Assembly (NCBI RefSeq): GCF_004010195.1
Contig: NC_057711.1
Location: 3,481,931-3,545,930 of the forward strand
Length of the DNA stretch: 64,000 nt
Direction: 5' to 3'
From: Chiloscyllium plagiosum
Lineage: Eukaryota
Under the pieces are notes generated by a model, which had not been told where the DNA came from, ran no database searches, and saw only the letters and a program-made list of their open reading frames with translations. Both the position numbers and the translations under genes were made by a program. How positions within the stretch are numbered: position 1 is the first letter of the stretch; each line of letters starts with the position of its first letter. Positions 6,076-44,417 of this stretch are shown here, one piece after another.

Positions 6076-6134
6076 TTATCTCTTCACATTAAGGTAAAGT
6101 AGTTCAGTATATCCTTCCCTTCTCAGGAACAGGC
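6076..6134 (-). CDS. Candidate terminal cytoplasmic exon GLFLRREGYTELLYLNVKR* (YxxL plus ITIM-like LLYLNV)
   Basis: Acceptor tctgtgtttgagcag. The phase-1 reading continues the TM exon to TAA at 6076-6078. Caveat: it may lie inside an LTR-like repeat (~5241-6655). Confidence 0.45.
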
Positions 6135-6149
6135 CTGCTCAAACACAGA

Positions 6150-6352
6150 GGTAGAAAGTGAGGACTGCAGATGCTGGAGATCAGAGCCGAGAGCATGGTG
6201 CTGGAAAAATACAGCAGGTCAGGCAGCATCTGAGGAGCAGGAGAATTGACGTTTCGGGCATATGCCCTTCCTGATGTAGGGCTTATGCCTGAAATATCGA
6301 TTCTTCTGCTCCTCAGATGCTGCCTGACCTGCTGTACTTTTCCAGCACCACA
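6150..6352. mobile_element. Palindromic Penelope-derived element with 15-bp TSD
   Basis: Inverted arms at ~6197-6268 and ~6279-6349. TSD ctgctcaaacacaga at 6135-6149 and 6353-6367. Confidence 0.85.
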
Positions 6353-7079
6353 CTGCTCAAACACAGAATAAAACTAAAAAAAACCTCTTCCTCCAAACTA
6401 TCTTTGAAGCTTTAACAAGAACAAGTTCCAGAAATCTCTAACAAACCTTGAGGACCCATTATTTATCTTACTGAACCATAAAACAGTCTAAATAAACAAC
6501 AATCCATCAATTCTAAAGCTAGGCCTCAAAATAAGCTGTTCTTAGAAGAAATCATCATGTCTACAGCAATACTAACAGGCCAGTTATTAACCTTAGACAT
6601 GCAGAAAATCCACGTTACTAACTTTAAAAAAACCTCAAACTTAGAACAAATAATATTGAATATAGAAAGCTGATTGGGAGGGTGAACTGTGAAGAGGATA
6701 CAAAGATACTTCAGTGCAATTTGGACAAGTTCAGTGCAAATGCGTTACAGTTGAAGTATAATGTGTTAAGTATGAGGTTATCCACTTTGGTAGCAAAATC
6801 AGGAACAAGACAATTTGCCAGAATTCCCTTGGTCCAGGGGAGGTCCCATTCCATTCAAAAATTATGAATGTACCTCCTTTATTCAAAAAGAGGAGGAGGG
6901 AGAGAGCAGGAAATGACAGGACAGTCTGCTTATCCTACAGAGTGAAAATGTTAGAAGCTAATATTGAACACAGTATAGCAGGTCACATTGCTGAAATAAA
7001 ATTGCTCAAATAAAATAAAAGAGAAAAGAAAACATTAGGATACACTGTGCATATATTTTTCGAAGGCCTTTGATAATGT

Positions 7080-7670
7080 AAAAAATAGGAACAGGATTAG
7101 GCCATTCAGCCCTTTGTGTATGCTTTAATATTCAATACAATCATGATTGATCATCCATTTCATGACTTTGTTCCCGCTTTCTCCTCGTACGATTTGATTA
7201 ATTTAGCCTGAAGAACTACACCTAACTCCTTCTTAAAAGCACTCAATATTTTGCTTTCTGTGGCAAGAATTCCATAGGCTCACCACGTTTTGGGTGAAGG
7301 AATTTCTCCTCATCTCAATCCTAAATGACATACCCCATATTGTTAGACAGTGACCTTTGGTTCATGACTGCCCAGTTATTGGGAACATCTTTCCAGCATT
7401 TACCGTGTCTAGTCTTGTTAAAATTTCATATGTTTTCTTGAGATTACCCACCTTGTTCTTCTTAGCCCCAGTGAATATCATACGTCAATCCTGCAATCCC
7501 AGGAATCAGTTCAACAAACCTTCATTGCACTCCCTGCTCGTCATAAAATCCTTCCTCAAATAAGGAGACCAAAATCTCACACAATACTCGGGGTTGTGGC
7601 CTCACCAAGGCCCTATACAATTGCAGTAAAGCATTCCTGCTGCTGTACTCAAATCCTGTCAATCTGAAGC
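7080..7670 (-). mobile_element. CR1 LINE 3' fragment
   Basis: Minus-strand GFEYSSRNALLQLYRALVRP motif and CR1 3' UTR. Confidence 0.8.
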
Positions 7671-8546
7671 CATAATGCAACTGACAGAGATAGGGAAGGA
7701 GAGGACGTGAAGATAAAGATAGCAATTTGAACTTCGCAAGGTGACATCATAGAACTCAGGAGTCTGAGGTCTACAACATGGCTGAGATGTCCTGGATGTT
7801 CAATTTGATCAGCCAGTGCAAAGATAGATCAGGAGGGTAGCCCCAAAACAGATCAGTGCCTGAACATTGCACCCACTGCATAGGCCCAAAGAGGAGCCCA
7901 TGTTACCATCCACCCCTAGATATAGCTCTGTTACTCAGACTATCTACTTTTGTGCAGCAAACTCTCCAAATCTATTTTAACAATAAAAACACATAAGGTA
8001 CACAGAACATAGAACAGTACAGCACAGAACAGGCCCTTCAGCCCACGATGTTGTGCCGACCACTGATCCTCATGTACGCACCCTCAAATTTCTGTGACAA
8101 ATTATTTTGAATTGAAGCTTCCTTTCTGTTTAATTGAGATTCTGTGCTGAGTGGGAATGAATGGAAAAGGTGAGGTCTGTTGGGATTTTGTTAAATGGGA
8201 TTGAATGAAAAGACATTTTGGTGCATTGAGATTTGACAGTAATAGGGAGTAGAATGGGGATTGATCCAGAGTTCAATAGAATGGGTTTGAATGGCTTTGC
8301 TTGTGAAACAGCCTCAGTGTTCAATCACTCATGGGAAAAGTCAAACATGAGACAGATACTAGAGAGTGGCTGATGCTATCAACCAGGCCAACTTCACCCA
8401 CCCTCCACCACACACTATAATCAAAGCTAGTTTTTAGTGAATGTATTGAAGAGGATAGTGAGGGAAATTTTATGTAGAGTCATCATTTGTTGCTGTTTCA
8501 AAAACAGAACCACGTTTTATTTAACCTCATTCCCTACAGAACCCAC

Positions 8547-8654
8547 CTCCTATCTTCCTGAAGGTGATGAAGATGATGACAATGATGATGATAAGGAGGA
8601 TGATTAGCAGTGGAATTACCAGCAGATTTACAGTGGTGGGCTCAGTCTTCTTCA
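8547..8654 (-). CDS. Transmembrane exon VKKTEPTTVNLLVIPLLIILLIIIIVIIFITFRKIG
   Basis: Acceptor tcttgctgttttacag and donor GGAG|gtgggt; 108 bp, phase 1-1. About 22 hydrophobic residues followed by an RK stop-transfer. In frame with exon B2. Confidence 0.85.
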
Positions 8655-12105: not shown

Positions 12106-12932
12106 ATTTACTGAGCATCCTCCATGACTGGTTTTCCAAAGTGTCTGTTTCCATGCGGTATGACTCAATGACTCAATATCTGATTGTAGCTGGGAAAAAG
12201 GTTGGTATAAATGATGAAAATGGGGTGGAGGGAGGGCAGAGGAATAAACATTTGTTGGAGATGGAGTTCAGATAGAGAGAAACATATAGAGAATTAGATA
12301 GATAGAGTTGGATAGACAAATTAAAGGGTGAAGTTCAGCCTGGAAGAATGAACAGCTGTTCATGAGCACCATTAGTTGATGAGAATGGATTGTTTCTGGT
12401 AGCAGTCCATGTGATGACAAGGCCTGGTGTGTGATGGTTGAGTGAAGGAAATAGGAGAAGTTGGTTAGGCCCTAAAATTATTGAACTCCATATTGAGTGC
12501 AGGAAACTGCAGAGTCCCCAAGTGAAAAATTACGTGCTTTTATTCCAGCTTGCACTGAGCTTCACTGGAGCACAGTAATAAGCCCGAGACAGAGAGGGTG
12601 GCCAGGGAACATGGTGGTGTTGAAGGGGCAGGCAATAGGAAGCTCAGGGTCATTTCTGTGTACAGAATAGAGGTATTTTGGAAAGTGGTCATCCAGTCTG
12701 TGTTTTGTCTTCCCAAGTAGAGAGGTAGAAGTGAACTGTGCAGGATTGATGGATGATGAGCAGCTATGAGGTGGTGCTGATAGATGGAGAGAGGGGTCAG
12801 GATAGTGCCATGCATTGCCATATGCATGGAGTGTGAATGGCAGATTTCATTCTCAAAGTCAAGTCGCCATTTTCTTAGCAAACCATGGGGCTGTTCTCTC
12901 ACGAAGAGAGATATAACCTGTGGGTCACCGTG

Positions 12933-13281
12933 GGCGGCACGGTGGCACAGTGGTTAGCACTGCTGCCTCGCAGCGCCAGAGACCCGGGTTCAATTCCCGC
13001 CTCAGGCGACTGACTGTGTGGAGTTTGCACGTTCTCCCCGTGTCTGCGTGGGTTTCCTCCGGGTGCTCCGGTTTCCTCCCATAGTCCAAAGATGTGCAGG
13101 TCAGGTGAATTGGCCATGCTAAATTGCCCGTAGTGTTAGGTAAGGGGTAAATGTAGGGGTATGGGTGGGTTACGCTTCGGCGGGTCAGTGTGGACTTGTT
13201 GGGCCGAAGGGCCTGTTTCCACACTGTAAAGTAATCTAATCTAATCTATCTAATCTAATCTAATCTAGTCTAATCTAATCT
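12933..13281 (+). mobile_element. Young HE1/V-SINE with (taatc)n tail
   Basis: A box tggcacagtgg, B box ggttcaattcc and full V domain. It is nested in an older tRNA-SINE; the empty site is at ~37495. Confidence 0.95.
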
Positions 13282-14171
13282 ATAACCTCAGGTGAGGGAA
13301 GAGTTGAGAAGGAAGGTGCTCCATGGAACCTGAGCCAGTATGGGGTTTGATCCACATTGTAGGCTACATATTGTTTCTCAAGCCAACTGTCCAGTCAACT
13401 GAGCGAAACGGATTCCTAGATTACCTAAAAGGCATGACTGAATCAATTGGGCTTTTCCATATATCAACAAAGTGGCCATGAGATTAGCTTTTTATTTAAA
13501 CTCCAGATATTTACACATTACATTCACATTTCACAAATTTCTGCTGTGGTGGGATTTGAACCCAGAGCCCCTGACTTGTGTGTTTGGCTTGGTCTCCCAG
13601 TGACAGTAACAGTACATCACCACCTTCCTTTATAACCCATGTGTGAACGCAGGGCTAGGATAGGTTCCACATGGCTGTGATGCTGCAAACATTAAAATGG
13701 ATGCTGTGGGAATGTACTTGCCCTATTTCTGATGAAGGTGTGAACACTTTCATTGTGACCAACAGAGACACATTAGACTGTTGCACCTTCCTGTTCGAGG
13801 AGATTATCTCAACGTCAGTATAACTTTGGATCATTTGGAGATTTAACTGAATGTTCTGAGTGTGTCAATGTCTTTCAATACTGACATCAGAATGTACCTA
13901 AAAGAATCAACACATCAAATTAAGTTAAATATTTTTAAAAATCAAATTTCAAATACAAAAACAAAATACTGTAGAAGCTGGAAATTTGGAACAAAAATCA
14001 AAATTCTGCAAATATTCAGTCGGTCAAACAACACCTGTAGAGAGAAAAATGGTTAATGTTTTAGTTCAGTGATGTTTCACCTGAAAATCCAATCCTAAAA
14101 AGTTCACAGAATCTGTTCCATTCTCTCCGTACAACATCTACAGACAGAAGAATGTGTGAATGGCCTCTTAC

Positions 14172-14525
14172 CAGTTATGACCTGCACCCGACTCTCTTTC
14201 TGAATCAGACACTGAATATCCAGTGGTAGTGATGTGTATTCCAACACACACAGATAAGTGTGATTGTCCCTCACACTCAGCTGGTTTATCTTGGTCGAGG
14301 CGTTTCCCTCCTCTGGGTTCCCGATGAGCTCGTACCGATTTCCACTGTGTACAGTTGTCCAGTTTCCCTGTGATTGGGCTGTAAATGTAACGATGTGTTG
14401 ATAGGGCTCCTTCCTCATCCAGGTGACAGTGGTCAGGTTAAGGACCTCCATGGTCTCAAAGATACAGGGTAAAGTAACTGAATCTCCCTCTGTCCCACTC
14501 ACCACTGAGACATTTCCCTGAGCAG
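14172..14525 (-). CDS. Ig V-set exon B2
   Basis: Acceptor tttatcctttcctcag and donor ACTG|gtaag; 354 bp, phase 1-1. Has the canonical B-strand Cys (VTLPC), C-strand Trp (VTWMRKEPY) and DxxxYxC (DNHTYLC). Confidence 0.92.
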
Positions 14526-17500
14526 CTGAGGAAAGGATAAACATCAGAATGGATGAGGTCAGAAGCTCGAGATTCAATTTGTTACATTTCTTTCAACTTC
14601 ACAATAAAATGAACAATTAAAACCTCCACCCATATCACTCATGGGTCTATTCCAGATATTCCCCTGCTGTCACCCTGATCAAAATCTCTCCTCTCAATTT
14701 TAGAAACTTGATCACAAGATTGTTACAAATTAGGAAATCCATTCAGCCCTCCTGAATTCATTCATGCAGAACCCTCCACCCATTGCTCAAAGTTAATATT
14801 CTTTAAACTAGGTCACGGATTTTACAACCTTCCCCCTCACTCTGTCCAGCAAACGCATTCAAAATATTGATCACACACTGTGTGAAGGAGAACCCCCTGG
14901 TATAATTCCTAATGTAACCATTCACCAGTTCAAACTTGAGTTTTGAAAATAAGCACAGGTTAATTCAAACTTGTAGTCTATATTAAATTTTGAATAAAAT
15001 ATTTTGTGTGCAAGAGGAGTGATAGTTCAGCCATGTGGCTTTTCACTGCATAAGTTTAAAGATGAGCTGAGAGGTGATCTGATTCCTCATTCCCTACTTT
15101 AAACGGGAAACCTCATTTTCAAATCAGTTCATCTTTTGTTCACAAGAGCAAGTATCCTCTCAGAATCTGTCCTGTCAAATCTCTTCAGAATTTTCTTTGT
15201 TTCAGTAATTTCTCCTCTAATATTTTTTATTCATTCATGGGTGTCTCTGGAAAAGATTACGTGCATTTATTGTCCAACTTGATTGCCAAGGAGCCGCTGC
15301 CTTCTTGAACTGCTGCAGCCCTGAGGTGAAGGGGTTACCCACAGGAATTCTATGGATGGAGTTCCAGGATTTTGACCCAGCAACACTGAAGGAATGGCAA
15401 TATGGTAAGAATGGAACCAGACTACTTTGTATTGAGTGAGGCTGCAAAAACAATGAGAGCAGACACAGCCGTGTCAATCCTGTAAAATCCTTCCCATTAA
15501 CATCTGGAAGCTAGTACAAGAAGTGGAAGAGCTGCCTCACAGACTGGTCAACTAACAGCCTCACATAGACCAAATGCATGGAATCATAACTCACAATATC
15601 TCAGGTACCACAATTGCCATTGCTGGATATGTCCTGTCCCACTGGCAGGGACAGACCCAGCAGAGATTGAGGCGCTGTGATATACAGTGGGAGGAGGTTG
15701 CCCTGGGAGTACCTAACATGAAGTCCCCAACTTAAAGTGAACATTGTTAGCCCATGGAACTACAATCTGTAACCTCACCATTCAGGTTAACTACCAATCC
15801 ACCATTCTCATCAGGCTGGGAGATCAATGAAATGTATGTGTGAGGATGCTGTGAGCAACACCAGGCAAACTGAAAAATATGATGCCAACATTCTGAAACT
15901 ACAACATCCAGGACAGCACACAATAGAGCCATCCCATAACCAATGGATCAGATGGCTCTGCAGTACTGGTTCATACACTCCTGAATGATAGAGGACAATT
16001 GCTGCACCAGTTGGTTCAGTAGAGTTTTACAACACTGGAATCTCTCCAACAATGGGGAAAATTGCCCAGGTATGTCCTGTATACAAAAAGCAAGGTGATT
16101 CTGACCAGGCAATTTACCGCTCCATCAATCCACTCTCGATCATCAGGGAAGCGATGGAAAGTGAGTGACTGCCCTTAACATCAAGGCTACATTTGAATAG
16201 GTGGAGCAAATGGGAGCTTGAGGAAAACTGAAGCCAATGGGAATTGGAGGAGAATCCTCTTTTGGTTTCAGTTATACCTGGCACATAGGAAGATTGTTGC
16301 AGTTGTTGGAGGTCAGCTCCAGGACACCGCTACAGGAGTTCCACAGGGTAGTGTCCTAGGCCCAACCATCTCCTGCTGTATCATCAGTCCTCCCTCCACC
16401 ATACGGTCAGAAGTGGGGATGGATGTTTACTGATGAACATGGGATACAGGAGAACATCACCACATACAAGCTTCCCTCCAAGACACTCACCATCCTGATT
16501 TGGAAATATTGCACCATTCCTTCAGTTTTACTGGGGCAAAGTCCCATTCATTTATCAACTACATCATGACTATCCCTGCAGCTGAGGGAATGCAGAAGTT
16601 CAAGAAGGCAGCTCACCATTCCCTTCTCCAGGGCAATTAGGGGTGGCCAATAAACACTGACTGTGCGTGTAACACCCACATCCCCTTAAACAATTCCAAG
16701 ATAAATAGTGCCAAGTCAGGATGATGTGCATCTGCTGCTGTTTATCATGGTGGTCGTAGAGGTCACTAGTTTGGGAGGTGCTCGAGATGGAAGTGTTGGC
16801 GCTTAACTGCAGTGTATTTTGTAGTTACTTTTCTTCCCAGAATGGTGTTTGGGTTGAAGTTCCAGGATTTTCAGCCAGCAACTGTGACAGGACAGCGATA
16901 TATATTCCTGCACTCTTCCAGAAACAATGGGAGTATTCCACCACGCTCCTGACTGATCAATAGGTTTTAATGTCAGAAGGTGTGTTAATTTACAGGATTC
17001 CTAGCTTGCGACCTGCTCTTGGAGCCACAGTTTCATTTGCACTCCTGGGTTCACTCCTTGTCCACAAATGAGTGAGCCATTCAGAGGTAGTTAAGAATGA
17101 ATCACATGACTATGGGTACAGAGATGTGTGTATGTCTGACAAGGTAAGGATAGCAGATTTTCCTCCCTAAAGGACATGAGTGACCCAGATGATTTTACTT
17201 TTACAGTGATGGATACATGGTCATTATGAGAGTACTTTTTAGTCTGAGATTTTTTTCAATTCAAATTTTACAATCCAGCTGGGATTGGAATCATTCACAA
17301 GGACATTAACCTCTGGAGAAGGCAGCTTCCCTAATTTTCTCCTCAGCTAATAGAGAGGGAGACAGCAACTGTGAGGTTCTCAGCCAATGTGAGCTGAAGG
17401 TTCTTTCACTCTGAGGCATGCTCATCCAATGAGGGCTCAGGAGGTACGAGTTTCTCTGTACTCCACCCAATGCTGACGGGGCAGGGCTTTCACTGGTCGG

Positions 17501-17712
17501 AATCTAGGAGCTTGGATCTTGAGGATATTTAGTTTGTCCCCTATCCCAGAATGCTGAAGTTAGTTTAAACATAGTAAATGAATGATTGTGTGAGAGACTG
17601 TGGGAAGTTTCAGATGGAATATTCTATAAATTCCAGTCAATATCACTGCCTCCTGCCTCAGTCCAACTGAAAGGGCCCAGGACAAGGTGCAAACCCAAGA
17701 GCTCCCAGAAGA

Positions 17713-18398
17713 GGTGAAGCCAGTCCCCATTGTGCTATAAGGGCAACAACACCATCCGAACAGATCCTTTATGCATGCCCAGACTCTCAGCCGCACCGCA
17801 CACTGCCCTCGAAGCAGGGGGGATGAGACTGTCACACACCTCCTTCTGGAATGTGCTTACGCAGAAGAAGTCAGGAGAGGAATGCAGTGGTGTTTGTCGA
17901 GGTGCGTCCTGAGCAGCACCGTGACGTGGGACTCCGTGCTCTACGGTCTCTTCCCTGGGATGCACACCGAGACGAACAACATCAACTGTGCCTGGAGGAT
18001 CATCAACTCGGTGAAGGACACTCTCTGGGCGGTCCGAAACCTGTTGATCTTCCAGCTGAAGGAGTTGACCCCGATTGAGTGTTGCAGACTGGCACATTCC
18101 AAAGTCTAGGACTACGTGTTGAGAGACGCGCTGAAGCTTGGGGCAGCTGCCGCCAAGGCGCGGTGGGGAAAGACCACCGTGTAACGTCTGCCTGCCTAAG
18201 AACAGGGGGCCCACGCAGTCATTTGGGCTCTGCTGACGCCTCAGCTAAAAATGTAATCGTACCAACCTGTAAATAGGAATGATTACTCTGTTTCGGTATG
18301 CAAACAAATGGAATGTTTACATATGTAAGGCATGTCCAACTGTACAGACCATTAAAGTATTTAATGAATAAAGTATACTTTTGAAATTAAAAAAAAAT
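17713..18398 (+). mobile_element. L1/Tx1-clade LINE 3' end with polyA signal and tail
   Basis: C-terminal Cys/His motif HCPRSRGDETVTHLLLECAYA, then WAVRNLLIF; aataaa at ~18367 and an A-tail to 18398. Confidence 0.85.
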
Positions 18399-18416
18399 CT
18401 GAACATTGTTCCTCAC

Positions 18417-18797
18417 CTATCACTTCCAGAGCTGTCCCCAACAGCGTTTCGAAACTGCCAATATTGAATTCCACACAACACCGATAGAAACCATCATCCT
18501 CCCGGCTCAGTCCCTCCATCATTATTGAGACATCTTTGTTGCTGAGGTTCCCCACGAATCTGAATCGATTCCCACCGTCCCGCTGTCTCACATTCTCACA
18601 CAGCTCACCCTGGGAATGGTCTGGACCAGGATATGTACACTTAAAGATAACACCTGTGTCAGATTTAATCCATATGACGGAGCCGGTGAGTGTGAGGTGA
18701 GTGTCAGGATGGGTGAAGCTGCAGGGTAAGACAGCGGAGCCTCCTTCCTCAGCCCTCACGTCGTTCGCGACCGTCATTGACCAACCATTACCAGAAT
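18417..18797 (-). CDS. Ig V-set exon A3, Siglec-15-like (F-strand Arg replaced by Cys)
   Basis: Acceptor (ct)n-cccctcacaacag and donor ATAG|gtgag; 381 bp, phase 1-1, open. Encodes YRCCVEF...GTALEVI. Confidence 0.92.
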
Positions 18798-18919
18798 CTG
18801 TTGTGAGGGGAGAGAGAGAGAGAGAGAGGATATGAACAGCACAGACACCAAACAGTGAGGTAAAACACTGAATCCGTTATATAGTGCGCAAAGATAACAT
18901 TTCTGACTTATAAACTGAC

Positions 18920-18983
18920 CTGAGACAGTGTGGAATGAGTTACAGCGTGGAGCACACAGAGGACGTCAGTACTTTGTAAACAT
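18920..18983 (-). pseudogene. Disrupted leader-like exon upstream of A3 (in-frame TGA)
   Basis: ATG TTT ACA AAG TAC TGA ... ACT GTC TCA G|gtcagt; 64 nt with a phase-1 donor about 120 bp above the A3 acceptor. Confidence 0.45.
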
Positions 18984-19269
18984 CCTGAAGTTAGACTGTG
19001 GGTGTTTGTTGCTGTTGGTTGAAGAGAGGGTTTGGTGCCTGAGAGTTAACTGAACTCTCCATTGTTCCAGGAGATCCAGAGTTATCTGAAGACCAGGGCT
19101 CAGGGCCCTCCCTGCAGAACCTTTTCTATTTCCCATCACTTTCTACTCTATTACCGAGCTAGCCTTCAGCAATCTGGCTCAATCATCAGTCACAGCAGAG
19201 GGATGGCTGATTCGGTGAATGTACCGCAGAGGGAAATACACAAAGAAATAAAGATGAAGAGCTGAAGTA

Positions 19270-19475
19270 AATTTGTCATAGTCCCAGAGAACTACAGTCT
19301 TATTAGAAAGGTATGATCGGTGGTGATTTAAACTGTGGGTACCTATGCCTCAGATAAGGGGCAAGGTTGAGAAGATGGGATCTTCATGGTCACCTCAGAC
19401 AGTATGGGAATTAAACCTGCATTGTTGGCATCACTCCACATCGCAAACTAACTGTCCAGCCAACTGAGCTAACTG
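19270..19475 (-). mobile_element. tRNA-derived SINE (non-HE1)
   Basis: Minus strand tagctcagttggctgg (A box) ... ggtttaattccc (B box). Paralogs at ~44710-44912, ~37420-37615 and ~12860-13410. Confidence 0.7.
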
Positions 19476-20199
19476 GCACAAAAAGATAAACCAAGTAGTT
19501 CTAGAAGGCAGTGTGAATATCAAGTGAGGGCATAAGGGAGTGTGGCATGGTTAGATGTAATTTACTTGTGAATAAGGCAGATGAGCTGAGGGTGTAGATT
19601 GATGAGTGGGGAAATGACATTGTTGTTATCACAGAGGCATGGTTGACGGTGGGGCAAGATGGGCCCTATAGTGTTCAGGCTCATAGAACCATCAGATGAG
19701 ATATGTAAGGATAGTGGGGAATGTAAAAGAGGAGGGGTGTCGCAACATTGATTAAGTAATCGATTGCTGTAATAAAACGGATGATATCTCAGAATGTTCC
19801 TCAAATGATGCCACATGATACAATTTAAAAACAAATCCCCCATCACCACCTTCTTCATCATATGATCAAGTTAATTTTGTGTCCAATTGGCATTCTTTCC
19901 CTGAGTCCCATGTAATGTCAGACATGATGTGGAGGAGCCAGTGTTGCACTGGGGTGGACAAAGTTAAAATTCACACAACACCAGGTTATAGTCCAACATG
20001 TGGAGCCTAGGAGAGTCATAGAGGTGGGAAATCCGAAAACACTTTAAAATGTACTTGGATCACCAATTGAAACTTCATAGCATTCAAGGTATGGCCCAAA
20101 TGCTGGAAAGTGGGACGAGTGTAGATTTAGAGTGTTTTTTTTTGGTGTACACTCAATGGGTTCAAGGGCCTCTCCTGTTCTGTTTGATTCAATGATTCT

Positions 20200-25934: not shown

Positions 25935-26318
25935 CTTCAATTTCCAGCTTTGTTGGAGACTGTGTTTGAAAACTGCCAATATTGAGCTCCACACGACACA
26001 GATAGGAACCAGCAGCCTCCTGGCTCAGTCCCTCCATCATTACTGAGACATCTTTGTTGCTGAGGTTCCCCACGAATCTGAATCGATTCCCACCGTCCCG
26101 CTGTATCACATTCTCACACAGCTCACCCTGGGAATGGTCTGGACCAGAATATGTACAGTTAAAGATAACACCTGTGTCAGATTTAATCCATATGATGGAG
26201 CCGGTGAGTGTGAGGTGAGTGTCAGGGTGGGTGAAGCTGCAGGGTAAGACAGCAGAGCCTCCTTCCTCAGCCCTCACTCCATCCATGACTGTCATTGACC
26301 AACCATCATCAGAAACCT
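25935..26318 (-). CDS. Ig V-set exon A2, Siglec-15-like, essential Arg retained (YLCRVEL)
   Basis: Acceptor (ct)n-cccccctcacag and donor GAAG|gtgag; 384 bp, phase 1-1, open. Encodes WSMTV...AVLPCSFTHP...FNC...ELC...RFRFVGN...YLCRVEL...TKLEIE. Confidence 0.92.
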
Positions 26319-26423
26319 CTGTGAGGGGGGAGAGAGAGAGAGAGAGAGAGAGAGACAAAGGATGTTAACACATCACCAGCACAGTTATCAGTGTGTGGAA
26401 CTGAAACTTTGAGACTCTGATCT

Positions 26424-28147: not shown

Positions 28148-28205
28148 CTGAGGTAATGGGGTATGTGCAGTGGACAAGAACGCACATTGCTGAACACAAG
28201 AGCAT
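28148..28205 (-). CDS. Candidate signal-peptide (leader) exon MLLCSAMCVLVHCTYPITS
   Basis: ATG at 28205, 19 codons plus 1 nt, then TCAG|gtacca (phase 1). Joins in frame to exon A2 1.8 kb downstream. The donor is non-optimal. Confidence 0.5.
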
Positions 28206-34258: not shown

Positions 34259-35408
34259 CAGAGTCATAGAGTCATAGAGATGCACAGCATGGAAACAGAC
34301 CCTTCGGTCCAACCCGTCCATGCCGACCAGGTATCCCAACCCAATCTAGTCCCACCTGTCAGCACCTGGCCCATATCCTTCCAAACCCTTCCTATTCATA
34401 TACCCATTCAAATGCCTCTTAAATGTTGCAATTGTACCAGCCTCCACCATATCCTCTGGCAGCTCATTCCATACACATACCACCCTCTGTGTGAAACGTT
34501 GCCCCATAGGTCTCTTTTATATCTTTCCCCTCTCACCTAAACCTTTGTCCTCTAGTTCTGGACTTCCCAACCCCAGGGAAAAGACTTTGCCTATTTACCC
34601 TATCCATGTCCCTCATCATTTTGTAAACCTCTATAAGGTTACCCCTCAGCCCCTGATGCTCCAGGGAAAAAAGCCCCAGCCTGTTCAGCCTCTCCCTATA
34701 GCTCAAATCCTCCAAACCTGGCAACATCCTTGTAAATCTTTTCTGAACCCTTTCAAGTTTCACATCTTTCCAGAATTGCATGCAATATTCCAACAGTGAC
34801 CTAACCAATGTCTTGTACAGCCACAACATGACCTCCCAACTCCTGTACTCAATTCTCTGACCAATAAAGAAAAGCATACCAACACCACCTTCACTATCCT
34901 ATCTACCTGCGACTCCACTTTCAAGGAGCAATGAACCTGCTCTCCAAGGTCTCTTTGTTCAGCAACACTCCCTTGGACCTTACCATTAAGTGTATAAGTC
35001 CTGCTAAGATTTGTTTTCCCAAAATGCAGCACCTCGCATTTATCTGAATTAAACTCCATCTGCCACTTCTCAGCCCATTGGCCCATCTGGTCCAGATCCT
35101 GTTGTAATCTGAGGTAACCCTCTTCGCTGTCCACTACACCTCCAATTTTGGTGTCATCTGCAAACTTACTAACTGTACCTCTTATGCTCACATCCAAATC
35201 ATTTATATAAATGACAAAAAGTAGAGGACCCGGCACCGATCCTTGTGGCACTCCACTAGTCACAGGCCTCCAGTCTGAAAAACAGCCTTCCACCACCACC
35301 TTCTGTCTGCTACCTTTGAGCCAGTTCTGTATCCAAATGCCTGGTTCTCCTTGTATTCCGTGAGATCTAACCTTGCTAACCAGTCTCCCATGGGGAACCT
35401 TGTCGAAC
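34259..35408 (-). mobile_element. Young CR1 3' fragment nested in older CR1
   Basis: [21 protein letters not shown] and SKFADDTKIGG; (agagtcat)n tail. Confidence 0.95.
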
Positions 35409-35576
35409 TTTGTGCCTTTATTTAATAAGGGATGTAAGGAAAAGCCCGGGAATTACAGACCTGTGAGTCGGAATTCAATGGTGGGTAGCTAGGAATGTAA
35501 GGAATGATTTGGGATACTTAGCATTGTTTTGTCTGAGGGAAATTGTGTCTCACAGACATGATTGAGTTTTTAGGTA

Positions 35577-35905
35577 GGGCAGCACGGTGGCGCAGTGGTT
35601 AGCCCTGCTGCCTCACAGCGCCAGGAATCTGGGCTTAATTCCAACCTTGGGCGACCGTCTATGTCGAGTTTGCATGTTCTCCCTGTGTCTGTATGGGTTT
35701 CCTCCCGGTGCTCCATTTTCAACCCACAATCCAAAGTTGTGCAGGTTAGGTGAATTTGCCAAGCTAAATTGCCCATACTGTTATTGGATATGTAGATTAG
35801 GTGCATAAGTCCGGGGTAAATATAGAATAATAGGGGAATGGGTTACTCTTCAGAGGGTCGGTATGGACTTGTTGGGCCAAATGGCCTTTTTCCATACTGT
35901 AGGGA
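35577..35905 (+). mobile_element. HE1/V-SINE
   Basis: gggcagcacggtggcgcagtggttagc head and V domain. Confidence 0.9.
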
Positions 35906-38348
35906 TTTTAAGTTCATAAACAACATAATTGGTGAAGGCAGAGTTGGAAATGTTCTTTATTCGACTTTAGTAAAGTCTTTGACAAGCTTCCGTATGGTAG
36001 ACTAATTAGTAAAGTTAGATTATGTGGGATTCAGGGTGAGCTTGGCAATTGGATACAACATTGGCATAACGGCAGAAGACAGAGAGTGACTGTGGAGTGT
36101 TGATTTTTGGACTGGAAACCCGTGACTGGCAGTGTTCCACAGGGATTGGTGCTGGCTCCACTTTTGTTTGTCATTTATATAAATGAATTAGATGAAAATA
36201 TAGAAAGCATAGTTAGTAATTTGTGGATGACACCAAAATTGCTGGTAAATTGGAAAGTGAAGATGGTGATCTGAGATTACCAAGAGATCTTGATTAATCA
36301 GGTCAATGGTCTGAAGAGTGTCAGGTGGAGATTAATTTGGATAAATGCAAGGTATTGCATTTTGGAAAAACAAATGAAGGCAAGACTTATAAATTTAAAA
36401 GAACAGAGAAAGACCTAAGCTTTCTTTCTTTGACTTTACATCGCTTATAGATAGGGTGATTAAGGTGCTGTTCAGCACGCTTGCCTTCATTACTCAGATT
36501 GCACCATGTTGACGTTGTACTGAACATTGGTGAGGCATCTTCAGGAGTACTGTCCACTTCTGGTTACCCTGTTATTGGAAGGATATTATTAAGCTGGAGA
36601 AGGTTCAGAAGAGATTTATCAGGATTTTGCTGGGAATTGAGTGTTACAGCAAAAAGGAGAGACTGGATAGGCTCGAACATTTTTCACTGGGGGCATAAAA
36701 GGTTCAGAGGTGATCTTATAGAGTTTTATAAAATTATGAGTGGTATAGATAAGATGAATGGTCGATGCCCTTTCTGTAGGGTGGGGCATTTCAAGACTGG
36801 TGGCATATTTTAAGGTAAGAGGAGTAAGATTTAAAAAAGACATGAGGAACAATTTTTTTATATAGACAGTGGCTTGTGTGTGGAATGAAGATCAGGAGCA
36901 AGTGGTGGATATAGGTACAGTTACAATGTTTAAAAGACTTTTGGATAAGTACATGAAGAAGAAATCTTAGAGGGATATGGGCCAAGTGCAGCCAGATGGG
37001 ATTAGTTTAGACTGTGATTATGGTTGGCATGGACTGTTTGGACCAAAGGGTTTGTTTCGATGCAGTATGCCTTTATGACTGTCTGACTCTACAAATGATT
37101 GTTGCTGGGAAAAGGTTGGAATAAATTATGAAGATGAGATGGACAGAGGGGAGAGGAGCAAACCCTCGGTGGAGATGGAGTTCAGGGAGGAAGAAAAACT
37201 GTTGGATAGACAAAGGAATGGTAAAGGTCAGCCTGGGAGAATGAACAGCTGCTGATGGGCACCATTAGTCGCTGAGAATGGATTGTTTGTGATAACAGCC
37301 CATGTCTGATGGGCTGGTGTATGTGGGTTGGGGGGAAGGAGATAGGAGAAGGTGCTTTAGCCTTAAAATTATTGACCTCAATAATGAGTCCAGGAGGCAG
37401 ATTTCATTCTCAAAGTCAAGTCACTATATTCTTAGCAGACCATGGGGCTGCTCTCTCACTAGACAGAGGTAATTGATGGCGATTTAACCTGAGGTCCACC
37501 ATACTTCAGGTGAGGGGAGAAGTTGAGAAGGCAAATCGTTCATGGTAACCTGAATAGTGTGGGAATTGAACCCATGTAGGTTTAACACACCAATTGTTCA
37601 ACCAACTGAGCCAAACTGACCCCTAGTTTTCCTAAAAGGCATGACTGTATCAGATGGGCCTTCTACATATATCAACAACGTGGCCATGAAATTAGCTTAT
37701 TTAAATTCCAGATTTTTAAACATTTCATTCAAATTTCACAAACTTCTGCTGTGCTGGAATTTGAACCCATAGCCCCAGACTTGGGTGTCTGGAGTAATCA
37801 TCCAGTGACAGTAGTAGTATACCACCAAGTCATGTGTGAATGCAGGACTCAGATAGGTCCCACATGGCTGTGATGACTCACATAGTCAAATGGAGACTGA
37901 GAGAATGTACTTGCATTGATGGAACTATTCCTGATGAAAACTTTCATTGTAACCAAGAGGAACACATTCGACTGCTACACCTTCCTAATTGAGGAGATGA
38001 TCTCAATATCAGCACAAATTTGGGTGCTTTGGAGACTGAACTGAATGTTCTGCATGTGGTAAAAGTCTTTCAACACTGATATCAGAATGTATCTAAATGG
38101 ATTAGCACATCAAATTGCTTAAAATATTTTAAAAATCAAATTCAAAACACAAAAGCAAAATATTGCTGATGCTGGAGATTTGGGAAAAAAAACAATCAAA
38201 ATGCTGCCAATACTCAGCACACCAGATAACACCTTGGAGAGAAACAGTGTTAATGCTTAGTTCAATGACCTTTCACCAGAGAATCAAGTCACAAAAAATT
38301 CACAGAATCTGTTCCATTCTCAGATGAAAGAATGTGTGAATGGCTCAC

Positions 38349-38702
38349 CTGGTATGACCTGCATCCGACTCTCTTTCTGGATTAGACATTGAATATCCTC
38401 TTGTAATAATGTGTAATCCACCACACACAGGTAAGTATGATTGTCCTTCACAGTCAACTGGTTTATCTGGATTAAGATGATTCCCTCCTCTGCGTTCCCG
38501 ATGAGCTCGTACCGATTTCCACCATTTACAGTTGTCCAAGTTCCCTGTGATTGGGCTTTAAAAGTAACAATGTGTTGATAGGGCTCCGTCCTCATTAAGG
38601 TAACAGTGGTCAGCTTGAGGAAGTCCATGGTCTCGAAGATACAGGGTAAAGTAACTGAATCTCCCTCTGTCCCACTCACCACTGGGACACTTGCCTGAGC
38701 AG
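38349..38702 (-). CDS. Ig V-set exon B1; core Trp replaced by Leu, possibly defective
   Basis: Acceptor tttgttctttcctcag and donor CCAG|gtgag; 354 bp, phase 1-1, open. Encodes GTEGDSVTLPC...TVTLMRTEPY...RYELIGN...INQLTVKDNHTYLC. Paralog of 14172-14525. Confidence 0.87.
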
Positions 38703-39247
38703 CTGAGGAAAGAACAAACATCAGAATTAATGAGATCAGAAGTCCTTGATTCAATTTGTTCCATTCCTTTCAACTTCACAATAAAATGAAGAATTAAAAA
38801 CTCCATTCATATCTCTAACAGGTCTCTCCCAGACATTCCCCTACAAGAGTCACCTCGATCAAAATGTCTCTCTACCTCTTAATTTAAGAATCCTAATCAT
38901 AAGATACTTAGAGATTAGGAAATTCATTGTACCTTCCCGAATTCATTCATGCAGAACCCTCCATCCATATTCTTTACATGAGATCAAGGATTTTACAGCC
39001 TCCCCCCCCCTCACTCTGTACAGCAAATACATTCAAAGTATTGACCACACTCTGTGTGAAGGAGAACCCCCTGGTGTCATTCCTAATGTAACCATTCATC
39101 AGTTCTAACCTGTGACCTTTGAAATGAGCACAGGTTAATTTAAACTCAGAGTCCAGATTAAAATTTTCTACACTGAGTAAAATATTTTTTGATACAGGTG
39201 GAGTGGTAATTCATGTGGCTCTTCACTGCATGAACTTTAAAGATGAG

Positions 39248-39910
39248 GTTAAACCAAATCATCCGCCGACATTTCCGCCACCTCCAAACAGACCCCACCA
39301 CCAGGGATATATTTCCCTCCCCACCCCTCTCCACCTTCCGCAAAGACCGTTCCCTCCGTGACTACCTGGTCAGGTCCACGCCCCCCTACGACCCACCCTC
39401 CCATCCTGGCACTTTTCCCGGCCATAGCAGGAACTGTAAAACCTGTGCCCACACCTCCTCCCTCACCTCCATCCAAGGCCCCAAAGGAGCTTTCCACATC
39501 CATCAAAGTTTTACCTGCACATCCACTCATATCATTTATTGTATCCGTTGCTCCCAATGCGGTCTCCTCTACATTGGGGAGACTGGGCACCNNNNNNNNN
39601 NNNNNNNNNNNNNNNNNNNNNNNNNNNNNNNNNNNNNNNNNNNNNNNNNNNNNNNNNNNNNNNNNNNNNNNNNNNNNNNNNNNNNNNNNNNNNNNNNNNN
39701 NNNNNNNNNNNNNNNNNNNNNNNNNNNNNNNNNNNNNNNNNNNNNNNNNNNNNNNNNNNNNNNNNNNNNNNNNNNNNNNNNAGCTTATCTCTCCACGCTT
39801 CAGGCTCTCTGCCTTTATTCCTGATGAAGGGCTTTTGCCCGAAACGTCGATTTTGCCTGTCTTCGGATGCTGCCTGAATTGCTGTGCTCTTCCAGCACCA
39901 CTGATCCAGA
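39248..39910 (+). mobile_element. Penelope-like element 3' part (GIY-YIG endonuclease), 15-bp TSD
   Basis: CKTC...IIYCIRCSQCGLLYIGETG. TSD aactttaaagatgag at 39233-39247 and 39911-39925. The empty paralogous site is at ~15052-15066. Confidence 0.92.
39821..39848 (+). ncRNA. Minimal hammerhead ribozyme motif (PLE-associated)
   Basis: CUGAUGA-A-GGGC-UUUU-GCCC-GAAACGUC. Confidence 0.65.
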
Positions 39911-41798
39911 AACTTTAAAGATGAGCTGAGAGACAAACTGATTCCTCATTCCCTCCTTTAAACAGGAATCCCCCACTTTCAAACCAGTTCGTCTTTTGCT
40001 CACAAGAGCAAATACCCTCTCAGAATCTGTCTTGTCAAGTCTCCTCAGAACCTTCTTTTTTTCAGTAATTTCTCCTCTAATATTTTTTCATTCAGTCATA
40101 GATGTCACTGACTCAGATGATGTGCATTTATTGTGCATCTTCGTTGTCCAGGAGAAGCTGCTTTCTTGAACTGCTGCAGCCCTGAGGTGTACGGGTTACC
40201 CACAGTAATTTTAGGGATGGAGCTCCAGGGTTTTGACCCAGCAACGCTGAACAAATGGCAATATGGTAAGAATGGAACCTGCCTACTCTGCATTGAGTGA
40301 GGCAGCAAAAACAATGAGAGCAGACACAGCCGTGTCAATCCTGTAAAATCCTCCTCATTAACATCTGGAAGCTAGTGCAAAAAGTGGAAGAGCTGCCTCA
40401 CAGACTGGTCAACTAACAGCCTCACATAGGCAAACTCATGGAATCATAACTCACAATGTCTCAGGCACCACCGTCGCCACTGCTGGATATTTCCTGTTCC
40501 ACTGGCAGGACAGACCCAGCAGAGATTGAGGCGTTGTGATATATAGTTGGGAGAAAGATGTCCTGTGAGTCTCCAACTTGAAATCCCCAACTGAAAGACA
40601 ACATTGTAATCCCAATGAACCACAATCTATGTAAACCCACCACTCCACCATTCCCATCAGGCTGGGACATTAATAAAGGGTCCATGTGAGTATGCTGTGA
40701 CCAACACCAGGCAAACCTAAAAATATGAGGTCAACATGCTGAAACTACAACCCCTAGGACTACTTGGTTGTCTAACAGCAGAAACAGCACACAATAGAGC
40801 CACCCCATAGCGAATGGATCAGATGGCTCTGCAGGCCTGCTGCATACTTTCCTGAGTGGTGGTGGACAGTTGCAGTACCAGCTGGTTCAGTACTGTTACA
40901 ACACTGGGATCTCCCCAACAATGGGGAAAATTACCCGGGTATGTCCTGTACACACAAAGCAAGGTGAGTCTGACCAGGCCAATTACCACCCCATCAGTCT
41001 ACTCTTGATCATCAAGAAAGTGATGGAAAGTGAGTGACTGCCCTTAACATTAAGGCCACATTTGAGCAGGTGTAGTGTCAATGAGTCTGAGTAAAACTAA
41101 AGCCAACAGGAACCTGGGGAGAAACCTCCATTGGTTTGAGTCATACCTGACACATGGGAAGGTGGTTGTGATTAGTCACTTCAGCTCCAGGACATCTCAG
41201 CAGAAGTTCCTCAGGGTAGTGCCCCGGTTCCCAACTCTCTTCAGCTGCTTCATCAATGACCTTTCCTCCACCATGAGGTCAGAAGTGGGGATGAATGTTC
41301 ACTGATCAACATGGGATATAGGAGAACATCACCACCTACAAGCTTTCTTCCAAGACACTCACCATCCTGATTTGGAAATATTTCATCATTCCTTAAGTGT
41401 CACTGAGACAAAATCCTGGAACTCCTTTGCCAAGCACATCATGAATATCCCTGCAGCTGAGGGAATGCAGCAGTTCAAGAAGGCAGCTCAACATTCCATT
41501 ATCCAGGGCAATTAGGGATGGTCAAAAAGGCTGACCAAGCATGTGTCACCCACATCTGCTTAAAACATTACAAGATAAATATAGTTCCAAGTCAAGATGG
41601 TGTGCATCTGCTGCTGTTTTTCATGGTGGTCATAGACGTCACAGTTTGGTAGGTACTGGTGGAGGAAATGTTGGTGTCTTCCTGCAGTGTATTTTGTAAT
41701 TATTTTTATTCCCAAAATGGTGTTAGGGTGGGATTTCCAGGATTTGAGTCAGTGACAGTGACAGAGCAGTGATATATTTTTTCTGCTCTCTTCTCAGA

Positions 41799-42810
41799 TG
41801 TGATGATATTGCTCCTTTAACAAGGTATGTTGTCCTTGGCTTTTTTTTTCCAGAGAGGTCATAAAAGGCACAGACTGCAAAAAGGCTAAGTTTGAAGGAT
41901 TTTATGGCCAGTTTGATTATAGCTAACAGATACTCCCTCAGGGAAAACATTTTCACATTAAAAAAAACACTTGTACAATGAAAAGCGGGTGGTCAGTTCT
42001 CCCAGCTCAGCTTCTTTCTGGTTTGACTTTTTTTGGATGGGCGGGGGGAGTCTTGCTATTCATTTAAAGCAATAAGGCAGTTTTGAAGCTGATCCTAGAA
42101 ATAGTTACATGATAGAGGGTGTTCCATGTTACCATCTCTCTCTCTCCGATAACTCTCCTATAAGACTCTCCTGTTAGACTGGCACAGTGGCTTGGTGGTT
42201 AGCATTGCTGCCTCACAGTTCCAGGACCCAGGTTTGATTCCAAACTTGAGCAACTGTGTGGAGTTTACACATCCTCCCCGTATATGTATGGGTTTCCTCC
42301 CACAATCCAAAGATGTTCAGGTTATGGTAAACTGACCATGCTAAATTACCAGTAGTGTACAGGGATATGTGCATTAGTCAGGGGTAAATGTAGAGTAATA
42401 GGATAGGGGTTTGGGTGGGTTATTCTTTGGAGGGTAAGTGTGGACTTGCTGGGCTGAATGGCCTGTTTCCACACTGTAGGGATTCTATGATGATGACCCT
42501 GTTTTTGACCATACCTTTTGTGCCAAGGGGTATTTATGGGGATTGTTGCAAGTTTTTGAAACAGTATCATTAAGTTGGGATAATCTGTTGGGTTTTCAGA
42601 TAGGTTAAGTTATTTGGTATTCTGTTCTCTTTTGCTGGTGTTTCATTCGGTAATTTGTAAATATATTCTGTTTTGTTTAAAACTAAGTGGTTTGGCTATC
42701 TGCACCTCTCCTGGAATATCCAGTCTATACCTGCTTAAAACAACTAGCAAAGTTAGTGTCTGAGGTACTTTCTTGAAATGTTCTGAGGGAGTCTGGCCTG
42801 GTCCTTAACA
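41799..42810. mobile_element. Solo LTR (TG...CA, 4-bp TSD caga) with nested HE1 SINE at ~42178-42495
   Basis: caga|tgtgatg...ccttaaca|caga. Absent from the paralogous site at ~16915-16925. Confidence 0.8.
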
Positions 42811-43663
42811 CAGACAGGTGGGGAGTATTGTGTCATTCTCCTGACTTGTCAAATAGGCTTTGGAGTCAGGAGGTCTGTTAATTCACAGGATTCCTAGCTT
42901 GTTTCCTGCTCTTGTAACCACAGTTTCATTTGCACTCCTGGGTTCACTTCTTGTCTACAACTGCTTGAGACATTGAGGGGACATATAAGAGTCAACCATA
43001 TCGCTGTAGGTATGGAGTCACATGTAGGTCAGACAAGGTAAGGATAGCAGATTTCCCTCCCTAAAGGACATGAATCCCCAGGTGGTTTTTATTTTATGGT
43101 GATGGATACATGGTCATTATGAGATTAGTTTTTTGTGCTTGATTTTTTTCAATTCAAATTTCAAAATCGGCTGGAATTGGAATCATTTGCAAGGGAATTA
43201 ACGTCTGGAGAAGATGTCTTCCCTCATTTTCTCCTCAGACCAAGAGAGAGGGGGATAGCAACAGTGAGGCTCTCAGCCAATGTGAGCTGAAGATTCCTTC
43301 ACCCTCAGACATGTTCATCCAATGAGGGCTCAGGAGATAAAAGTTTCTCTTTTCCTCACTTAATGCTGATAGAGCAGGGCTGTCACTGGTGGGAGTGTTG
43401 GAGCTTGGGTCTCGATGATATTTTCTCTGTTCTATATCCCAGAATGTCGAAGCTAGTTTAAATAGAGCAAATGAGTGAGTGTGTGAGAGACTGCAGGAAG
43501 TTTTAGAAATGGTGATGGAATGGTCTATACATTCCAGCCTATCTGACTATCTCCTGCCTCAGACCAACTGAAGAGCCCAGGACAAGGAACCAACCCGGAG
43601 CTCCCAGAACAAGTCCCTATTCAGTTATCTGGGCAGTGACACCATCTGAACATTGTTCCTCAC

Positions 43664-44047
43664 CTGTCACTTCCAAATATGTTCCCGTCGATGTTTGGAA
43701 ACTGCCAATAATGAGTTCCACATGACACTGAAATAAACCAGCATCCTTCTGGCTCAGTCCCTCCATCATTATTGAGGCATCTTTGTTGCTGAGGTTCCCC
43801 ACGAATCTGAATCGATTCCCACCGTCCCGCTGTCTCACATTCTCACACAGCTCACCCTGGGAATGGTCTGGACCGGGATATGTACAGTTAAAGATAACAC
43901 CTATGCCAGATTTAATCCATATGATGGAGCCGGTGAGTGGGAGATTAGTGTCAGGGTGAGTGAAGCTGCAGGGTAAGACAGCGGAGCCTCCTTCCTCAGC
44001 CCTCACGTCGTTTGCGACTGTTATTGACCAACCATGAGCAGAATCCG
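43664..44047 (-). CDS. Ig V-set exon A1, Siglec-15-like (F-strand Arg replaced by His)
   Basis: Acceptor tctcccctcacag and donor ACAG|gtgag; 384 bp, phase 1-1, open. Encodes WSITVANDVRAEEGGSAVLPCSFTHP...IIW...FNC...ELC...RFRFVGN...FQCHVEL...GTYLEVT, matching the Siglec-15 V-domain motif order from memory. Confidence 0.9.
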
Positions 44048-44177
44048 CTGTGAGGGGAGAGAGACAGCGAAAGAGAATGTGAACACAGCACAGACACCAA
44101 ACAGTGAAGTAAAACACTGAATGTATTATACAGTGAGAAAAGGTATAGTATCCTACAATCGTTGTTTATAAACCGAT

Positions 44178-44417
44178 CTGAGACAATGTAGAATGAGTTA
44201 TAGACTGCAGCACAACAGAGAGCTTCAGGTGCTTAATAGAACATAGAATATTACAGCGCAGTACAAGCCCTTCAGCCCTCAATGTTGCGCCGACCTGTGG
44301 AATCAATCTGAAGCCCATCTAACCTATACTATTCGATTCTTGTCCATATGCCTATCCAATGACCATTTAAATGCCTTTAAAATTGGTGAGTCTACTACTG
44401 TTGCATTTTGTAAACAT
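44178..44417 (-). pseudogene. Disrupted leader-like exon upstream of A1 (CR1 3' end inserted, donor GT changed to AT)
   Basis: Homologous to 18920-18983. ATGTTTACAAA is separated from the rest by a CR1 3' fragment (~44235-44405), and the donor position reads tctcagATcggt. Confidence 0.45.

Follow-up and report, generated by a model that had tools for sequence, protein, structure and literature searches.

Nine exons of a candidate receptor gene on the minus strand

We analyzed a 64,000-nucleotide (nt) stretch of the Chiloscyllium plagiosum genome (contig NC_057711.1, positions 3,481,931 to 3,545,930; hereafter the window) and found on its minus strand the exons of a candidate receptor gene with five immunoglobulin variable (V) domains, three of which resemble the V domain of Siglec-15. 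The five V exons, named A1, B1, A2, A3 and B2 in the direction of transcription, are open, are in phase 1 at both ends, lie between an AG acceptor and a GT donor, and match the Pfam V-set model with E-values of 1.5e-9, 2.9e-9, 1.6e-10, 4.7e-11 and 1.5e-14, respectively. When the exon peptides were compared with the window by tblastn, these were the only V exons and a single transmembrane (TM) exon was present, whose hydrophobic core, LLVIPLLIILLIIIIVIIFITF, carries no charge. An earlier reading of the same DNA made from its letters alone (the sequence-only reading) had already reported the five phase-1/1 V exons on the minus strand and an uncharged TM exon, and both descriptions hold.

The window also contains a leader exon and two small cytoplasmic exons of the same family. 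Joined in the order L-A1-B1-A2-A3-B2-TM-E8-E9, the nine exons are consistent in phase and add up to 2115 nt, or 705 codons. The comparisons were made exon by exon, and the joined model is given here only as exon lengths, phases and per-exon translations (Table 1). The predicted arrangement would be the leader E1, the row A1-B1-A2-A3-B2, one uncharged TM exon and two small cytoplasmic exons closed by a TAA codon. Translated in full, this would give a 704-residue type I membrane protein whose ectodomain has five V domains. Shorter isoforms are possible, since all V exons are phase-symmetric. In our view the exons probably form one gene, which runs on the minus strand from about 52.8 kilobases (kb) to 3.7 kb and belongs to a family of elasmobranch receptors that derives from Siglec-15; the joining of the nine exons in one mRNA is what we infer.

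Table 1 Coordinates of the exons, candidate exons and duplicated modules in the window
Feature	Position	Strand	Description
E1, leader exon	52734..52797	minus	64 nt, ATG to phase-1 donor GTAAGT, MMKSLYVCLSAVFLSVSVRGR; found by tblastn with the relative P0003
E2, V exon A1	43664..44047	minus	384 nt, phase 1/1; Siglec-15-type V; His after the F-strand Cys
E3, V exon B1	38349..38702	minus	354 nt, phase 1/1; pIgR/TIM-like V
E4, V exon A2	25935..26318	minus	384 nt, phase 1/1; F-strand Cys followed by Arg, unlike in A1 and A3
E5, V exon A3	18417..18797	minus	381 nt, phase 1/1; Cys after the F-strand Cys
E6, V exon B2	14172..14525	minus	354 nt, phase 1/1
E7, stalk and uncharged TM exon	8547..8654	minus	108 nt, phase 1/1, KKTEPTTVNLLVIPLLIILLIIIIVIIFITFRKIG
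E8, cytoplasmic exon	4880..4919	minus	40 nt, phase 1 to 2, FSRQIQLTTFSR
E9, coding part of tail exon	3699..3744	minus	(R)NDPDLSSILETAQA, then TAA; relatives bearing an inhibitory motif continue past this point
Candidate tail exon of the sequence-only reading (putative)	6076..6134	minus	59 nt, phase 1, LFLRREGYTELLYLNVKR then stop; inside the E7-E8 intron
Candidate leader of the sequence-only reading	28148..28205	minus	58 nt; inside the B1-A2 intron, bracketed by inverted repeats 27430-27712 and 28453-28735
Module copy 1 (A1 and B1 with introns)	37043..45356	minus	self-BLAST
Module copy 2 (A3 and B2 with introns)	12136..19916	minus	self-BLAST
Last coding exon of upstream paralogue	62186..62223	minus	(x)NVIYAAVVNTN then stop; canonical inhibitory motif of the family

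The same exons occur in the same succession in predicted proteins of related sharks. The Hemiscyllium RefSeq XP model P0216 consists of the last 46 residues of A2 followed by A3, B2, TM, E8 and E9 in that order, with exactly one split-codon residue between successive matches and identities of 85, 88.5, 94, 80, 92 and 89%, respectively (B2 aligns with its residues 176-292 and the TM exon with its residues 294-328). The junctions A2>A3>B2>TM proposed in the sequence-only reading are exactly those of this model. A3 is also 94% identical to the Chiloscyllium punctatum protein P0202. Ectodomains with two or more V domains, which had likewise been anticipated, are found in the relatives' RefSeq models: P0215 of C. 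punctatum reads B-A2-B-TM-E8-E9, Stegostoma P0213 reads L-A-B-A-B, and both Hemiscyllium P0210 and C. punctatum P0211 read L-A-B-A-B-TM-tail.

Two side observations concern the V exons. On the minus strand the pyrimidine tracts adjoining the acceptors of A2 (26319-26355) and A3 (18798-18830) consist of long (CT)n runs, and at the A1 acceptor the (CT)n tract is shorter and interrupted. A further A-like match at 63357-63199 was weak (tblastn E 0.055-0.77) and was dismissed as chance.

Internal duplication and constraint on the V exons

Self-comparison of the window revealed a collinear internal duplication of the two modules listed in Table 1, in blocks that are 74-86% identical. The duplicated A-B module has no leader and no TM exon of its own, and A2 is an additional copy of the A exon whose duplicated flank measures only about 100 nt. 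The row of five phase-1/1 V exons would have arisen by internal tandem duplication of an A-B exon module together with one extra A exon, starting from what appears to be the basic ectodomain of the family, in which a V domain of Siglec-15 type (A) precedes one of pIgR/TIM type (B) and C2 is absent. The interval 6076-44417, which had been taken for a cluster of receptors, is thus better described as belonging to one gene with an internally duplicated exon module.

The two copies have diverged very unevenly. Duplicated introns differ at 18-26% of positions and carry 11-15 gap openings per kb, whereas the V exons contain no insertion or deletion in 372 or 345 aligned coding nt and are 87-91% identical, as against 74-82% for the intron blocks. 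The ratio of nonsynonymous to synonymous substitution rates (dN/dS) is 0.78-0.83 for the pairs of A exons and 0.44 for B1 and B2. The V exons are under constraint, their frames being held open, and the A domains are fast-evolving.

Neither assembly gap touches an exon, and each falls within a transposon in an intron. The gap at 39592-39781, within the A1-B1 intron, sits in a transposon insertion whose unique flanks are collinear with one continuous paralogous stretch of the intron upstream of B2 (14716-15640), the matching pairs being 38901-39247 with 14716-15066 and 39911-40500 with 15052-15640. The gap at 29707-30350, within the B1-A2 intron, is flanked by sequence collinear with one intact copy of a long interspersed nuclear element (LINE), 29460-29706 corresponding to 35407-35161 and 30351-30735 to 34642-34260, both at about 92.5% identity, and the open reading frame (ORF) that reaches it encodes a reverse transcriptase (RVT_1, 2.9e-22). 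Comparison with the LINE copy indicates that about 518 nt are actually missing here, against 644 N written in the assembly. This collinearity supports the order and orientation of the sequence across both gaps; the intron lengths across them are estimates. LINE and reverse transcriptase fragments (RVT_1 and self-matches) are plentiful on both strands of the window, at 1273-2900, 9700-11300, 22200-25000, 29061-30736 and 33200-37100, and the introns of the five-V gene consist largely of transposon sequence.

Leader and cytoplasmic tail

The sequence-only reading had assembled a different and shorter gene, in which a leader at 28148-28205 was followed by A2, A3, B2, the TM exon and a tail at 6076-6134, giving a receptor of 447 residues that would be inhibitory through the sequence LLYLNV. 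Its arithmetic is correct (58+384+381+354+108+59 = 1344 nt) and its phases are right; its inner junctions are, as described above, used by Hemiscyllium P0216, which likewise has no upstream leader; and LLYLNV, an immunoreceptor tyrosine-based inhibitory motif (ITIM) in type, fits the signature [I/V/L/S]-x-Y-x-x-[L/V] given in an excerpt of PMC7226832. The exons at the two ends of this model are open and carry splice signals; as used exons they are not supported.

At the 5' end, E1 matches the N-termini of 67 of the 305 relatives fetched (E <= 0.01, up to 94% identity) and joins A1 in phase to give ...VRGR/TDSAHGWS (the slash marks the junction), where P0003 and P0210 have ...VRGH/TDSANGWS. The 28148-28205 candidate has no N-terminal match among the same 305 proteins (best E 0.12) and lies between inverted repeats of 283 nt that are 95.8% identical. 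The region aligns weakly (E about 1) with the middle of an A exon and may be an exon relic.

At the 3' end, the TM exon of relatives is followed by one of 40 nt and this by one beginning RNDP, and the window has both with good splice sites. The 40-nt exon was sought with peptides of distant relatives, but the resulting lead near 4152 was false, having no acceptor and upstream stops in all frames; it was located with the close orthologues P0216 and P0215, to which it is identical at 11 of 12 residues (P0216 330-341) and 9 of 12 residues (P0215 376-387). E8 and E9 together give a cytoplasmic part of 32 residues, RKIGGFSRQIQLTTFSRRNDPDLSSILETAQA, that contains no tyrosine. For the 6076-6134 exon, no significant homologue in the proper place was found among the 305 fetched proteins, and a scan over 476 nt beyond its end at 6076 showed neither AATAAA nor ATTAAA, although poly(A) hexamer scans proved uninformative. 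A regular-expression search found no family-type ITIM exon downstream of E9 in positions 1-3600; such exons may lie beyond the window start. A model in which the gene begins at 28148-28205 and ends in an inhibitory LLYLNV tail is accordingly very unlikely in our estimation.

Some features of the two tails deserve mention in their own right. Immediately upstream of the 6076-6134 exon on the minus strand (6135-6371) we observed a repeat element of about 200 nt flanked by two copies of CTGTGTTTGAGCAG, so that the acceptor of this exon exists twice; in its state before the insertion the acceptor was T-rich, which speaks for the shorter gene. Similar elements occur at 39784-39914 and at other sites in the window. 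If the donor of the TM exon is not used, the frame runs on to ...RKIGGGFCRE and a stop at 8529-8527, with an AATAAA at 8521 (8521-8546, minus strand), and the C. punctatum model P0218 ends in the comparable ...RKKEGGFCRE. This read-through could represent a minimal-tail isoform made by intronic polyadenylation. The models with a TM segment of the KKTEPTTV or NRTEPTTV type (P0216, P0215, P0212, P0004 and P0226) all end before any ITIM, at differing points: P0216 after RNDPDLSSVL, P0215 seven codons into the next exon, and P0212, P0004 and P0226 by running through the E9 donor. Taken from these automatic models, repeated decay of the tail in carpet sharks is possible.

One gene or two transcription units

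Among the points that favour a single gene are that only one leader-like exon and one TM exon are present in 64 kb and that the duplication includes neither. Several points weigh on the other side. The splice junctions in this genome rest on sequence, no listed sequencing run that holds the B2 exon being recorded as RNA. The proteins of the relatives are automatic Gnomon or ab initio models and some are imperfect, P0071 shifting frame within an A exon and P0216 having no leader. No single relative model contains all five V domains in the order of the window, and in C. punctatum P0202 the pair A3-B2 precedes another A2-like exon rather than the TM exon. At the 3' end the TAA of E9 is known from the assembly alone, and the 6076-6134 exon is phase-compatible and had a pyrimidine-rich acceptor before the transposon insertion, so it could serve as an alternative end.

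The B1-A2 intron, finally, is about 12 kb long, filled with transposons and interrupted by a gap, which makes two transcription units conceivable: L-A1-B1, secreted or with an unseen 3' end, and A2-A3-B2-TM-E8-E9 with an unrecognized first exon of its own. It agrees with such a division that Hemiscyllium P0216 begins inside A2 and that 24 of the 142 family proteins are A-B forms without a TM segment, many of these being likely partial models. However, searches of the window by tblastn, with the exon peptides and then with the proteins of relatives, found no second family leader, TM or tail exon; the gap falls inside a LINE and not in unique sequence; Stegostoma P0213 and C. punctatum P0215 and P0006 each join a B exon to an A2-type exon within one model; and the duplicated module lacks both a leader and a TM exon. 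We consider two units unlikely, and the nine-exon gene is the model used below.

Domain identity and the residues that bind sialic acid in Siglec-15

Against sequences in the PDB, A2 matches human Siglec-15 (7ZOZ) best, with an E-value of 3.9e-12 against 9.4e-7 for the next family, TIM-3, and 2.9e-5 for CD33, in agreement with the proposal of the sequence-only reading that the A domains are of the Siglec-15 V type. B2 is closest to domain 1 of pIgR (4.1e-9) and to TIM-2 (1.8e-8), followed by Siglec-15 (1.4e-6); judged by its sequence, the likeness of B2 to pIgR, TIM and CD300-type domains is one of similarity and not of membership. A and B domains are only about 26-30% identical to each other. 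With Siglec-15 the A domains share the tryptophan of WSMxV, the AVLPCxFTHP motif, the cysteine pair linking strands B and F, an extra cysteine pair, RFRxxGN and YxC(R)VE. The tryptophan and both cysteine pairs are kept in all three A domains, the second pair appearing in A1-A3 as FxC...ELC, with columns C54 and C67 at least 90% conserved in a 43-row sequence alignment. The absence of a C2 exon, also claimed before, held when six C2 domain queries were run against the window by tblastn (best E 0.15), and the proteins of close relatives have no C2 domain either.

In human Siglec-15, as set out in excerpts of PMC10264397, R143, next to C142 on strand F, binds the carboxylate of sialic acid, W44 also contacts the ligand, and the disulfides are C64-C142 and C95-C104. 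The residue that follows the F-strand cysteine differs among the A domains of the window (Table 1). The membrane-distal domain A1 therefore has no Siglec-15-type arginine, which is found only in the internal domain A2. The same states recur in models of relatives, with the A3 cysteine and the A2 arginine both present in C. punctatum P0202 and the A1 histidine in Stegostoma P0213. Sialoglycan binding, if there is any, would have to use the internal domain A2. A search of the window for a Lys-type TM exon found none. With neither a tyrosine in the tail nor a charge in the TM segment, the protein would send neither an ITIM signal nor a signal through a lysine in the membrane (DAP12 type), unlike its paralogues, and it would work either as a binder or decoy that does not signal or with the help of a partner chain; its expression, a ligand and this lack of signalling are what we infer.

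One could also read the exon array as a relic of duplications that is no longer expressed as a working receptor. The tail is cut before any ITIM, and this has happened by varied routes in the relatives' models too; A3 and the N-terminal A1 have no arginine; dN/dS of the A domains is near 0.8; and no listed run with B2 is recorded as RNA. Yet in the five V exons, the TM exon, E8 and E1 the frames are still open, the splice sites fit the consensus and both cysteine pairs are kept, and indels are absent, as against 11-15 gap openings per kb in the introns. The residue states shared with C. punctatum P0202 and Stegostoma P0213 are, moreover, old and maintained. Decay of the whole gene is for these reasons improbable.

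A family of A-B receptors in sharks and rays

A2 was scanned against 1.84 billion representative sequences, which yielded 171 proteins with E <= 0.001, 13 of them with E <= 1e-30; three word-index searches returned 6, 94 and 88 proteins. By their source names the close relatives all come from sharks and rays: Chiloscyllium, Hemiscyllium, Stegostoma, Rhincodon, Heterodontus, Heptranchias, Mustelus, Scyliorhinus, Carcharodon, Cetorhinus, Pristiophorus, Leucoraja, Amblyraja, Rhinoraja, Narcine, Mobula, Hemitrygon, Hypanus and Pristis. The highest identity to the exons of the window was 94% (Hemiscyllium and C. punctatum), and none reached 100%. Nearly all are automatic models labelled 'uncharacterized protein' or given assorted look-alike names, those assigned by NCBI including 'siglec-15', 'CD33-like', 'pIgR-like', 'JAM-like' and 'sodium channel beta-2-like'.

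As members of the family we counted the 142 fetched proteins scoring at least 70 bits against A2 or B2, a set that includes isoforms and members of clusters and does not represent independent genes. The commonest build (41/142) is leader-A-B-uncharged TM-long tail with ITIMs such as V[IT]YAAV, followed by leader-A-B-TM with a lysine, that is a charged TM, and a short tail (33/142). The lysine-type helices, for example IPLGLKTLALLVM, have the PLGxK motif that Siglec-15 of birds and mammals also carries. Of the 142 proteins, 13 contain at least three V domains, some in the order A-B-A-B; the A-B-A-A-B order of the window occurs in none. An uncharged TM segment combined with the absence of an ITIM, as in the window gene, is found in 10 of the 142 among A-containing relatives, plus 3 B-only proteins.

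A maximum-likelihood tree of 65 V domains, rooted on the B domains, separated a clade of bony-vertebrate SIGLEC15 and SIGLEC15-like proteins (support 95/88), a chondrichthyan clade that keeps C2 (99/92; Callorhinchus, Mobula, Heptranchias and Amblyraja), and a long-stemmed clade of elasmobranch A domains without C2 that includes A1-A3 (100/100). The two chondrichthyan clades are weakly linked (82/63), and the B domains of the groups with and without C2 form one clade (99/98). Two domains of the window have partners in C. punctatum P0202, whose domain 1 groups with A3 (100/98) and whose other A domain groups with A2 (99/93), which indicates that the split between A2 and A3 is older than these species. 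The proposal of a lineage-specific expanded family is borne out by this tree, in which A1-A3 fall into an elasmobranch-only clade, apart from the bony-vertebrate SIGLEC15 clade. From the sequences, the family is most likely a lineage-specific expansion in sharks and rays that derives from Siglec-15.

At the upstream end of the window, behind a good acceptor (tttctag), lies the last coding exon of a paralogue with the canonical ITIM of the family (Table 1), and the presence of this exon indicates that the locus belongs to a tandem gene array. The suggestion that the receptors are probably inhibitory thus applies to many paralogues, including this upstream neighbour with its NVIYAAVV, and not to the window gene as read by homology, whose tail has no tyrosine.

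The arginine is distributed unevenly between the two common builds. It follows the F-strand cysteine of the first A domain in 47 of 48 forms with an uncharged TM and an ITIM. Among forms whose TM is charged and which have no ITIM it does so in 15 of 31, the remainder having S, H, Q, Y, C, K, G, N or an unreadable residue. Both counts include isoforms and are not phylogenetically independent. Retention of the arginine in ITIM forms and its frequent loss in lysine-TM forms would be expected if pathogens mimic a self-sialoglycan ligand. We tentatively put forward, as a possible rather than a likely account, that a large undescribed paired family arose from Siglec-15 by gain of a second V type and loss of C2, in which the ITIM forms keep the arginine and the lysine-TM forms often lose it. 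In this scenario the window gene would be an extreme offshoot with a five-V 'stretched' ectodomain, its sole arginine-bearing head internal and its tail decayed independently in several hemiscylliid sharks, acting as a membrane decoy or co-receptor.

Comparison with known systems

Siglec-15, represented by human SIGLEC15 (7ZOZ) and orthologues of birds, frog and lungfish, is the closest sequence match to the A domains of the window, and its PLGxK TM motif is also found in the lysine-TM members of the shark family. Excerpts of PMC7226832 describe Siglec-15 as regularly present in fish with its lysine and arginine conserved. In contrast, the window gene has no C2, lacks the TM lysine that couples Siglec-15 to DAP12 or DAP10, has five V domains instead of one with a second V type (B) interleaved, and has the arginine in A2 only; its A domains fall outside both the bony-vertebrate clade and the C2-keeping chondrichthyan clade.

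The C2-keeping chondrichthyan proteins (Callorhinchus LOC103174418, Mobula hypostoma 'siglec-15' and Heptranchias 'siglec-12') have the same order of A then B and exist in both lysine-TM and ITIM forms, but they carry a C2 domain before the TM segment and their A domains form the separate clade. Nearer still are the unnamed elasmobranch A-B receptors, examples of which are Hemiscyllium LOC132821652 and LOC132826502, C. punctatum 'polymeric immunoglobulin receptor-like', Stegostoma LOC132206012, Mustelus LOC144495190 and Leucoraja LOC129695285. These have the same type of leader and of A and B domains as the window gene, and their exon junctions, their TM exon and their first two tail exons match as well; by these sequence characters the window gene belongs to this family without C2. 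Most of them have an ITIM tail or a charged TM, whereas the tail of the window gene stops before any tyrosine.

The usual picture of Siglec-15 is that of a conserved, single-copy, activating V-C2 receptor, and the cartilaginous fishes depart from it. They added a second V type, sharks and rays appear to have built a large paired inhibitory and activating family without C2, and V exons multiplied inside genes. This provides comparative immunology with a natural series in which to ask what the Siglec-15 head recognizes and how paired receptors arise. A defined family would also tidy the varied automatic names given by NCBI, and for the locus itself the practical result is a corrected gene model, without the inhibitory tail that had made it look striking.

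CD33-related Siglecs, CD300, KIR/LILR, fish NITR and skate MDIR all combine like ectodomains with either ITIM tails or a charged TM and a short tail, and they evolve as tandem birth-and-death arrays. The shark family shares this pairing logic and differs in its domain types, a Siglec-15-type V domain and a pIgR-like V domain. Excerpts of PMC3031540 describe skate MDIRs as a multigene family of activating and inhibitory receptors whose domains are of CD300/pIgR-like type. Among the 88 matches of the Leucoraja member P0013, none was named MDIR or came from the clearnose skate, a comparison made by protein name and source species. No description of the shark A-B family was found in the literature searched, which was short on subscription journals. 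Paired receptors of the immunoglobulin superfamily are well known; what is new in the shark and ray family is its domain build and its Siglec-15 origin.

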